From Bugula neritina (Eukaryota; Animalia; Bryozoa): a DNA stretch of 64,000 nucleotides. Within the stretch, counting starts at the first letter, position 1. Each line of letters opens with the position of its first letter. Made by a program: the position numbers and the translations under genes. A model generated the notes under the pieces. That model was given only the letters and a program-made list of their open reading frames with translations. It was not told where the DNA came from and made no database searches. This document shows, piece by piece, positions 497 through 62,334 of this stretch. The DNA lies in the NCBI GenBank assembly GCA_964035545.1, contig OZ037770.1:9430973-9494972 (forward strand). The letters are read 5' to 3'.

Positions 497-1248
497 TGCA
501 ACCAAAAGTAGCAATACCTCCATCTCCATCCAATTACCAGCCCCACCTTGGAGATTCAATCATCTTGCCCAATGTTTCATATAATGCGGAAGTTAGATTA
601 CATTGGTATGGAGTTTACATTACCGATTTGATTGAGTTTTCTCATGCAGTGATATACACAAGACATGACACAGACTGCCCTGGAGTTGATAACTGTTGTA
701 AGTGAAATTCATGCCCAGTCGTGAACTTGAAATTATTAAGTGAGTTATTATTCCTGTCGTAATTGTTTTTAATTTGAAAAAAGTTGAGTATGCGCGTCAT
801 ATATGACAACTGAAATACATAGCTAATATTATTCATGGATTTACATACTTTTTAATGAAACATAGTTAAAAAAATTGCACACTTTAAATACTTTATTTTA
901 CAGAAAAGTTTGTAAGCAATTGCTTTTAAAAAAATAGTAAGAATATAATGTTCAGCTGCAGTCTATTGATTTTAGACAAATATTTCAACAATACATATGT
1001 GAGTATCAGCCCGTACCATCATGCAGATTTCCATTCACAAATTCCAACAGAAAATGGAAACTTGGAATGGAAGACATGCACATACTTGAACAACGCAACT
1101 ACAAGTCGCTACCTTATAGCAGGGTGTGACAAGCTAGTGCCCTATGTCCGCTACCCCTATTTAAGGCACATATTGTTTATCAAGCGTAATGCGGCAGATA
1201 CTTTTCATCTTACAGAAGTCAAAATATACGAATATAAAAGACCCCAAA
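497..1248 (+). CDS. Gene 1 exons P (497-697) and Q (976-1248): putative galactose-binding/F-type lectin-like domain
   Basis: WYGV...[14 protein letters not shown]...CC and RY...LTEVKIY recall the WW.VDL...R.DCC and GRYV...LCEVEVY pattern of fucolectin/F5-8C-like folds. Homologous to gene 2 exons 58591-58797 and 54781-55056. Confidence 0.6.
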
Positions 1249-61500: not shown

Positions 61501-62334
61501 GGGATGATCTATATTTTGCCAAAATAGCTAGCTGATTTCTATATTAACTATACAGCTCATGAGGTGATGTTCACACAATTGAAATCTCCTTGTCTTTGAT
61601 CATTATTTAAAATTTTTTCTTTGTAAAAATTTATTACAATGTATAATATAATATAATATAATAAAAAATAATGTTACACAATATAATATATAGTACATTA
61701 TATTATAATATAATATAATATAATGTAAAATAATGTTATACAATATAATATAGTAAATTATAATATGATATAGTATAATATAATGTTATACAGTATAATA
61801 TTTATAGTATAATATAATATATGACTATACATTAGATTATACTACATTACATTATTCTTATAATATGTTATATTGTACTAATTTATATTATTTATCACAA
61901 TATATTATAAGATATAATAATATATAATATTATATAGTCTAATTTGTTATAATATAATTATTGCAATATGATATAATATAAATTTATAACATATAATGTA
62001 ATATGATATAATATAATATATTTATAGCAAGCTCTTTTTAATAGACCATGTATAATACATACAATAATTCTTTTATAAAAAAGCAGTTATAACTATGTCA
62101 CATTAAATTACATACTTTTTACTGTCACTTATTATTTTCAGCCACTGACCTTGTAGCAATCAGCACTATCAGGTCCTTTACATCCACCAGAACAAGTAGG
62201 AGAACAGCATTCTGCAGATCCAGACCCATAACAACCATTACTACAGCTAGCATGGCATTGTACTGGTAGTTTCTGGCAATAAATATCTAGTTGTGGTCCC
62301 CAACAATTGCCATTACATGCTGCTGCGCAGTTAT
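29322..62334 (-). CDS. Gene 2 (5'-partial): paralogous kinase-less EGFR-ectodomain-like receptor; CR1-like exons, two lectin-like domains, 3 tandem modules, TM and Lys-rich tail
   Basis: 27 GT-AG exons on the minus strand with consistent phases, about 5609 nt coding. Exon lengths and phases match gene 1. Confidence 0.87.
29934..30040 (-). repeat. Coding 18-bp minisatellite (DLKSKS x ~6)
   Basis: GATCTAAAGAGTAAATCA units on the minus strand, in frame in the last exon of gene 2. Confidence 0.9.
30328..30530 (+). mobile_element. tRNA-derived SINE (family copies also at ~4233-4357 +, ~8060-8233 -, ~60303-60485 +)
   Basis: Shared A-box/B-box-like head (GGTTAGAGC.TTTGCCTAGT...GGTTC) and body AAGGYCATTGGTG.T.TTAAGAAGAGCATCCAGTCATA in four dispersed copies. 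Confidence 0.65.
32230..35604 (-). CDS. Gene 2 module 3 (terminal type)
   Basis: Exons A 35392-35604, B 34140-34353, C 33855-34042, D 33495-33679, E 32664-32797, F 32230-32402. Confidence 0.87.
34915..35378. mobile_element. MITE / non-autonomous DNA transposon with 16-bp TIRs
   Basis: TAAAGTTGCGTTTATA ... TATAAACGCAACTTCA. Confidence 0.65.
35767..49843 (-). CDS. Gene 2 module 2 (introns expanded by LTR elements)
   Basis: Exons A 49631-49843, B 45495-45708, C 37537-37724, D 37158-37342, E 36663-36793, F 35767-35939. Confidence 0.85.
36061..36345 (+). repeat. Two tandem degenerate tRNA-like units (tRNA-Ala(TGC)-derived SINE heads or pseudo-tRNAs)
   Basis: TAGCGCAATTG.TTAGCAC..CTGCTTGCAAGC...GGTT.GAATC at 36061-36135 and 36270-36345; imperfect stems; related pieces near 55090-55170 and 22450-22490. 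Confidence 0.5.
38141..39099 (+). pseudogene. gag: Gypsy gag (frameshift near 38310) with CCHC zinc knuckle
   Basis: PTFTGEE/EQFIQEF...WP capsid-like region; [14 protein letters not shown] knuckle. Confidence 0.85.
38982..40790 (+). pseudogene. pol: Gypsy pol fragment: RNase H C-terminus, integrase zinc finger and DDE core
   Basis: [45 protein letters not shown]...[36 protein letters not shown]. Confidence 0.92.
41399..41951 (+). CDS. Putative spliced accessory ORF of the Gypsy element with a C2H2 zinc finger (3'-truncated)
   Basis: ATG 41399, donor GTGAGT 41424, acceptor TTTTTCAG 41688, joined in frame; [21 protein letters not shown] = C-x2-C-x12-H-x3-H. Confidence 0.5.
42315..42527 (+). 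repeat. 5' LTR
   Basis: Identical to 45252-45464 by direct reading. Confidence 0.95.
42662..42850. repeat. (GTGTA)n microsatellite and ~17-bp GCAGTGTTACTGTTGGT repeats in the LTR element leader
   Basis: Direct reading. Confidence 0.9.
43060..43840 (+). pseudogene. gag: Disrupted gag (two CCHC knuckles) fused to an extreme pol C-terminal remnant
   Basis: W.DW...LL..IG gag N-terminus; [14 protein letters not shown] and [14 protein letters not shown] at about 43542-43640; [13 protein letters not shown] resembles a Gypsy integrase tail. Confidence 0.65.
43914..44914 (+). CDS. Extra ORF(s) in the LTR element: triple CCHC-type zinc-knuckle protein (interrupted near 44486)
   Basis: [29 protein letters not shown] and [15 protein letters not shown]; lies between the pol remnant and the 3' LTR. 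Confidence 0.6.
45252..45464 (+). repeat. 3' LTR
   Basis: Identical to 42315-42527; preceded by a polypurine tract. Confidence 0.95.
47846..48795 (+). mobile_element. Truncated Gypsy element (5' LTR, PBS, frameshifted gag)
   Basis: TGTAATG...AACA LTR about 47846-48192; PBS TGGTGGCAGCAGTGGGAT 48194-48211; gag 48227-48795 homologous to 38141-38730. Confidence 0.85.
50004..54207 (-). CDS. Gene 2 module 1
   Basis: Exons A 53995-54207, B 53030-53243, C 52295-52485, D 51866-52050, E 51184-51314, F 50004-50176. Confidence 0.86.
51490..51765. repeat. (TATAC)n/(TA)n microsatellite
   Basis: Direct reading. Confidence 0.92.
54781..59557 (-). CDS. Gene 2: two putative galactose-binding/F-type-lectin-like domains
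   Basis: Exons 59378-59557 (ERWWTIEY...HSAILVTR), 58987-59235, 58591-58797 (RWYGVHV...[14 protein letters not shown]), 54781-55056 (RY...LTEVEIY); all phase 1-1. Fold assignment is by eye. Confidence 0.6.
55472..58400 (-). mobile_element. 5'-truncated, frameshifted CR1/L2-group LINE (APE endonuclease + RT)
   Basis: [23 protein letters not shown] (endonuclease); [24 protein letters not shown] (RT, 55798-56853); 3' end in a short (GATGA)n repeat. Confidence 0.9.
60092..62334 (-). CDS. Gene 2 furin-like Cys-rich exons (EGFR domain II-like)
   Basis: 62150-62334 encodes [58 protein letters not shown], with the Cys spacing of ErbB domain II. 60092-60209 encodes YEGCPAY...CVSDC...FCVSQCP. Confidence 0.82.
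60729..61217. mobile_element. Possible non-autonomous Helitron-like repeat; related inverted copy near 54520-54690
   Basis: Starts TTATACCCGG and ends ...TTTTCTAG; GC-rich core similar in reverse to 54550-54675. Confidence 0.3.

Follow-up and report, generated by a model that had tools for sequence, protein, structure and literature searches.

Kinase-less, likely EGFR-derived membrane proteins with a putative variable head on a length-variable stalk in the bryozoan Bugula neritina

The stretch of DNA analyzed here (the window; 64,000 nucleotides, positions 9430973 to 9494972 of contig OZ037770.1, hereafter C6) lies in the 216-Mb genome of Bugula neritina and carries two convergent genes for kinase-less proteins that resemble the EGFR/ErbB ectodomain, with its L domains (L1, L2) and cysteine-rich (CR) regions (CR1 or domain II, CR2 or domain IV). 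Gene 1 (g1) is on the + strand and gene 2 (g2) on the - strand; g0, g3, and g4 denote flanking paralogs. Exon models and splicing were deduced from the DNA, with AG/GT ends, phases, and frames checked; spliced models were joined locally to check frames and compare modules, and database searches were run per exon or with a public protein (P0004). Translated self-comparison yielded six exon types, with six copies of each on the + strand and three on the - strand. Every exon had AG/GT borders at homologous positions and compatible phases, and the spliced frames contained no internal stop, which upholds the six and three tandem modules of an earlier reading of this DNA from its letters alone (the original prediction). 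Within the window, gene 1 has 41 exons, as predicted, in six modules of six exons each plus the exons at either end, and gene 2 has three modules and 28 exons, one more than the 27 predicted. Terminal exons face each other, with stops 1.6 kb apart. The prediction of two undisrupted genes stood for the exons only: retroelement insertions occupy introns of gene 2 and leave its exons undisturbed. The features in window coordinates are as follows, where X is a further domain of the repeat unit.

497-1248 (+): gene 1 second insert domain, two phase-1 exons (497-697, 976-1248)
1528-6463 (+): gene 1 module 1, gene-specific type; exons B, C, D, E, F, A, encoding domain II end, L2, domain IV-like CR, half of X
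6634-10523 (+): gene 1 module 2
10682-13894 (+): gene 1 module 3
13992-17522 (+): gene 1 module 4
17689-20940 (+): gene 1 module 5, missing in an orthologous contig (L030) of another Bugula sample
21313-24552 (+): gene 1 module 6, F and A exons of terminal type
25136-25264 (+): gene 1 membrane-proximal X domain, second half
26501-26661 (+): gene 1 short stalk and first part of membrane helix
27071-27700 (+): gene 1 last exon; end of membrane helix, tail (20% Lys, no Tyr past the membrane edge), stop
29322-30095 (-): gene 2 last exon; end of membrane helix, Lys-rich tail, stop
30859-31034 (-): gene 2 Thr-rich stalk and first part of membrane helix
31407-31532 (-): gene 2 X domain, second half
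32230-35604 (-): gene 2 module 3 (terminal)
35767-49843 (-): gene 2 module 2; B-C and C-D introns swollen by retroelement remains
50004-54207 (-): gene 2 module 1
54781-58797 (-): gene 2 second insert domain (exons 58591-58797, 54781-55056), LINE in intron
58987-59557 (-): gene 2 first insert domain (exons 59378-59557, 58987-59235)
60092-60209 (-): gene 2 domain II exon with shortened dimerization-arm loop
62150-62334 (-): gene 2 first domain II exon, matching domain II of ErbB4/ErbB3/EGFR
62682-62807 (-): gene 2 last L1 exon, additional to the earlier 27-exon model

Both genes extend beyond the window. Upstream of each lie a candidate signal-peptide exon, weaker in g1 than in the other paralogs, and three exons of an N-terminal L1, an arrangement common to all paralogs. 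For gene 1 these exons, with the start of CR1 and the first insert, fall at C6:9425013-9430443; for gene 2 the remaining L1 exons and the signal-peptide exon are at C6:9502251-9505359. The original prediction had seen the first CR1 and first insert exons in gene 2 only, which is correct within the window, gene 1 having both upstream; its L-domain counts of six and three become seven and four once L1 is included. With flanking DNA, g1 (49 exons, 3127 amino acids [aa], 7 L domains) and g2 (31 exons, 2065 aa, 4 L domains) are open from start to stop and share one layout, consisting of a candidate signal peptide, L1, domain II with two inserts, six or three modules, one membrane helix, and a Lys-rich tail. 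Intact models across the cluster range from 1302 to 3127 aa with a single membrane helix each (hydropathy, one peak per gene). The g1 and g2 tails are about 20% Lys, in line with the single helix and Lys-rich tail predicted, and carry 0 to 4 Tyr and no clear signaling motif. Gene 1 encodes 80 glycosylation sequons and 211 Cys.

Domain identity was established exon by exon. Pfam Recep_L_domain matched exon C (24.1 and 22.0 bits versus a cut-off of 21.8) and Furin-like matched the first domain II exon, CR1a (E = 8e-7), with exons B and F below threshold; single L1, insert, X, and arm exons gave no Pfam match. L1 was assigned by position and motif. Searches with the first domain II exon hit ErbB4, ErbB3, and EGFR (E = 1e-7 to 1e-3) and no insulin receptor; for the CR-L2 junction exon, IRR/IGF1R/InsR (E = 1e-4 to 1e-2) scored slightly above ErbB. 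L2 is followed by Cys-rich, furin-like exons, one of which matches GF_recep_IV in the B. neritina ortholog, and the L1-CR1-L2-CR2 order of the EGFR/ErbB ectodomain is present. These Cys-rich exons and the ErbB-type domain II match point to EGFR order; given the insulin-type score of the junction exon, EGFR descent of the family is graded as likely. Profile searches against PDB with the arm exon, insert halves, and L2 exons found nothing meaningful, and the exon C and D profiles matched no solved receptor, the L domains being strongly diverged. For the X domain, exon A was modeled by AlphaFold as three strands at low confidence, with an FN3 likeness by eye only, and X had no Pfam, Atlas, or fold match. 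Six-frame translation of 264 kb contained no kinase motif and the last exons end in stops, as the kinase-less prediction requires; kinase is also absent from a related public B. neritina pair. Elsewhere in this genome (C1, C4, and C5), L-domain matches are adjoined by kinase matches, which suggests that normal kinase-bearing receptors are still encoded. Many small contigs of the assembly carry kinases read through TAA/TAG as in the ciliate genetic code, probably from a contaminant or epibiont.

Domain II departs from ErbB in two ways. Between two anchored cysteines it spans 77 residues in ErbB4 (C221 to C298), 67 here without the inserts, and 63 in public B. neritina, a shortening of 10 to 14 residues. 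Cysteine spacing places the loss in the arm-bearing loop, which has 26 residues in EGFR, 15 here, and 11 in public B. neritina. By this loop-length criterion the full ErbB dimerization arm (residues 242-259 of EGFR; PMC4902571) is absent. Directly after the shortened loop, four phase-1 exons add two domains of 142 to 160 aa. The cysteines flanking them are bonded to each other in EGFR, so the two inserts are probably looped out of domain II. The inserts had been called lectin-like, and a lead on fold survives: the nearest structures to the Atlas model of a public half-domain were fucolectin and F5/8 type C clusters (TM 0.58 to 0.63 by query). The F-type lectin fucose-binding motif, HX24RXDX4(R/K) (PMC5712786), occurred in 0 of 10 inserts even with a spacing of 18 to 30 allowed, and the insert had no Pfam or PDB sequence match. 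A discoidin-like fold, with sugar binding unproven, is a fair reading of these models. Among 1.84 billion proteins searched, Bugula-type sequences were the only matches to the insert.

The repeat unit of 367 to 369 aa comprises the end of domain II, L2, a domain IV-like region, and the first half of X, and is present once in g0 and g3, three times in g2, four times in g4, and six times in g1. Paralogs g3 and g4 share 98 to 99% identity over their first part, up to and including exon E of module 1, and 96.5% from exon E of g4 module 4 onward; the two alignments overlap solely in the 185-bp exon E, which has the lowest synonymous divergence (dS) of the module (0.13, versus 0.34 to 0.57 in other exons). 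An overlap confined to the exon of lowest dS indicates that an in-frame unequal exchange inside a homogenized exon joins the four- and one-module genes, and module number appears to change by unequal crossing-over, with loss a simpler direction than gain for the g3/g4 exchange. Introns between modules are mostly unalignable. The internal F-A-B junction is present in contigs of other sampled Bugula, so the amplification predates the split from those Bugula. In one such sample (L030:2885-3330) the gene 1 ortholog goes from module 4 to module 6 with no module 5, and the B exon at that join is frameshifted by a 20-nt deletion, on a single short-read contig that is possibly misassembled. An assembly artifact was considered as the source of the repeats and rejected: modules are 60 to 95% identical, their introns largely fail to align, and the F-A-B junction recurs in independent Bugula contigs.

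Head and stalk evolve differently. Among g0, g1, and g2, the most diverged of the genes, identity in the head is 51 to 54% for L1, 49 to 63% for insert 1, 56 to 74% for insert 2, and 57 to 65% for the first L2, whereas the ten L2 modules that do not come first in their gene share 85% identity (78 to 94%) across genes. Glycosylation sequons number 7 to 13 per 369-aa added module versus 3 to 11 per 600-aa head. Module pairs have a nonsynonymous-to-synonymous ratio (dN/dS) of about 0.4, and gene 1 compared with orthologs in other Bugula samples over 19 exons has a pN/pS of 0.28. Across the five genes, over 150 exons have retained their reading frame and splice sites as the inter-module introns diverged. 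The low pN/pS and the unalignable introns argue that the genes are maintained as proteins. Among young paralogs, change is concentrated in L1 (pN/pS 1.1; exon L1a, 20 nonsynonymous versus 5 synonymous changes) and in the first domain II exon (0.7 to 3.4; 10 versus 0 to 1). Internal A exons (e.g., window 6291-6463) encode only the first half of X and have a dN/dS of 0.31, indicative of purifying selection.

Inspection of the flanking DNA, which supplied the N termini, also revealed three further intact genes within 115 kb of the window and one split copy. g0 (C6:9393000-9399000) has one module, a mucin-like stalk encoded by a long exon, and two possible final exons whose Lys-rich tails differ, which suggests alternative tails; g3 has one module (1302 aa) and g4 has four (2421 aa). 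The split gene-1-like paralog has A, B, and C exons on one side and F, A, stalk, membrane helix, and tail exons on the other (C6:9506000-9521300, 9555600-9562100), with intact g3 between. In gene 1 itself, a Thr-rich, out-of-frame stretch directly before the stalk exon (window 26297-26500, +) is kept in this split paralog and may be a decayed piece of a once longer stalk exon. A convergent pair at C2:31.75-31.79 Mb has the same head as the cluster; public B. neritina protein KAF6016741.1 is 76 to 87% identical to that pair, and the public counterpart has one module, no X domain, and Tyr-rich then Lys-rich tails. About nine more distant domain II matches lie at C2:30.57-30.80 Mb. Relatives of the insert were limited to KAF6016741.1 and, in JGI and Logan samples, gene calls at about 82 to 90% DNA identity to the cluster; a metagenome scan for the locus returned nothing. 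On these searches the family appears restricted to Bugula, and the predicted lineage-specific origin from an EGFR-type ectodomain holds up on the domain II match, the missing kinase, and the Bugula-type insert matches.

The retroelements in gene 2 are of several kinds. The C-D intron of module 2 contains remains of a long terminal repeat (LTR) retrotransposon with RNase H and integrase domains (window 38100-41400, +), with related gag-like pieces at 48180-48900 and 63275-64000, and zinc-knuckle, gag-like open reading frames (43000-44900, +). An element of the long interspersed nuclear element (LINE) type with endonuclease and reverse transcriptase (55800-58410, -) sits between the two exons of the second insert domain.

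We tentatively consider a variable head on a length-variable stalk the best explanation of these genes. An EGFR duplicate would have lost its kinase and given rise to Bugula-restricted type I membrane proteins. Each would carry one gene-specific head, made of L1, domain II with two looped-out discoidin/F5-8-like beta-sandwich inserts, and the first L2. The stalk beneath it would consist of 0 to 5 additional, almost uniform, strongly N-glycosylated modules, their number changing by unequal crossing-over. If expressed at the cell surface, the head would engage a partner other than EGF on an opposing surface, be it that of another cell, the matrix, or a microbe, the modules would set its distance from the membrane, and the non-catalytic Lys-rich tail would anchor the protein or tie it to the cell cortex. 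Several observations weigh against this explanation. The only listed sequencing run, probably from the source individual, is DNA-like (introns evenly covered, no spliced joints), our own AlphaFold model of a half-insert was of low confidence and matched PLAT folds at Z 6 to 7, and the head pN/pS above 1 among young paralogs is not significant (P = 0.18 to 0.84). The added L domains are also under purifying selection, which fits upkeep of a fold but binding too, and their uniformity could be explained by recent origin and gene conversion alone. Even with a humbler role, the genes would represent a receptor kinase recycled as a non-catalytic surface family. In known receptors, two L domains together grip a growth factor and turn on a kinase; here a half-unit became a repeatable block, with up to seven L domains per chain, and the recombination behind the change in copy number can be read from two neighboring genes. 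The family offers testable candidates for surface recognition in bryozoans, which are colonial and show allorecognition (PMC9546547). A literature search, poor in subscription papers, found no description of a recognition gene in bryozoans or of this architecture.

Of the alternatives, a self/non-self family (allorecognition or microbe sensing), its heads diversified to tell conspecific colonies or symbionts apart, survives best and is nonetheless unlikely. The locus is a tandem cluster of divergent single-pass receptors under birth-and-death (five intact genes, one split, and one frameshifted copy in another sample), analogous to the Hydractinia Alr cluster (PMC9546547); amino-acid change of young paralogs is piled in the distal head (L1a, CR1a), and the tails of the one-module B. 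neritina pair are Tyr-rich. However, the excess of change in the head lacks significance, the tails in the window have few Tyr and no clear signaling motif, and the inserts lack the F-type fucose motif. The fuller version, in which a bryozoan self/non-self system was built from an EGF receptor ectodomain, with variable discoidin-insert heads held at graded heights on a domain III-IV accordion stalk, is doubtful to the same degree; if true, it would supply the recognition of colonies or symbionts in bryozoans with its first molecular candidate and add a new kind of scaffold to such systems.

The original prediction favored a multivalent array of the ligand-binding half of EGFR, and a decoy or trap that captures ligands of the EGF/neuregulin or insulin type, in the manner of DAF-2B, IRLDs, or Sdr, would make use of such repeats. 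EGF binding requires L1 and L2 jointly. Here L2 alone is repeated, without L1, the modules are uniform and sequon-rich, and the head is gene-specific, a combination that weakens the array and favors a head on a stalk over a multivalent trap for ligands. A complete L1-CR-L2-CR unit is retained, several L-domain genes in the genome adjoin kinase matches, and kinase-less L-domain decoys have been proposed in nematodes (PMC9262388, PMC10358897). Against this stand L domains so diverged that exon C and D profiles find no solved receptor, a 300-aa insert interrupting domain II, and a record of only two EGF-type ligands in the bryozoan Membranipora (PMC4914847), few for many diverse heads, and we regard a decoy as improbable. 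A glycoprotein that serves structurally at the surface or anchors matrix (adhesion, cuticle, glycocalyx), without a specific part in recognition, is no more probable than a decoy: giant size, the sequon and Cys content of gene 1, the mucin-like stalk of g0, and motif-poor basic tails would suit it, but several divergent heads under purifying selection are more than a generic scaffold needs. That the genes are a non-functional by-product of local duplication, as many intronic retroelements, the nearby split paralog, and the DNA-like run might suggest, is highly improbable given the preserved frames and splice sites alongside diverged introns and the pN/pS against orthologs.

Comparison with known systems places these genes nearest to EGFR/ErbB, with which they share the L1-CR-L2-CR order, the domain II match, the domain IV-like match in the B. 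neritina ortholog, and the single membrane helix; they differ in lacking a kinase, in the shortened arm loop, in the two domain II inserts, and in having up to seven L domains. A survey of metazoan EGFR, restricted to kinase-bearing sequences, found no variation beyond differing numbers of Cys-rich domains and inactive kinases, and reported a bryozoan expansion (PMC4914847). Insulin/IGF receptors share the L domains, the junction-exon score, and the lack of a long dimerization arm, but the Bugula L2 is followed by a furin-like Cys-rich domain rather than three FN3 domains, the N-terminal domain II is ErbB-like, and there is no kinase. Nematode IRLDs, DAF-2B, and Drosophila Sdr likewise have L domains without a kinase, and IRLDs show lineage-specific expansion, but all of them derive from or resemble the insulin receptor and lack inserts, and none is known to have a tandem stalk of L2-CR modules. 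IRLDs and DAF-2B are insulin-type, with ligand sequestration proposed (PMC9262388). The inserts resemble F-type lectins/discoidins in size (142 to 160 aa) and in Atlas structure neighbors, and differ in lacking the fucose motif and any Pfam or PDB sequence match. Stalks of tandem modules in variable number are found in complement receptor 1 and sialoadhesin, and clustered divergent single-pass receptors in a colonial invertebrate are found in Hydractinia Alr (PMC9546547); these have Ig or CCP domains and no homology to the Bugula genes, and the likeness is one of layout only. The Bugula proteins are not members of ErbB (no kinase, no full arm) or of the F-type lectins (no motif), and represent a real, intact, and lineage-restricted architecture that apparently has no earlier description.

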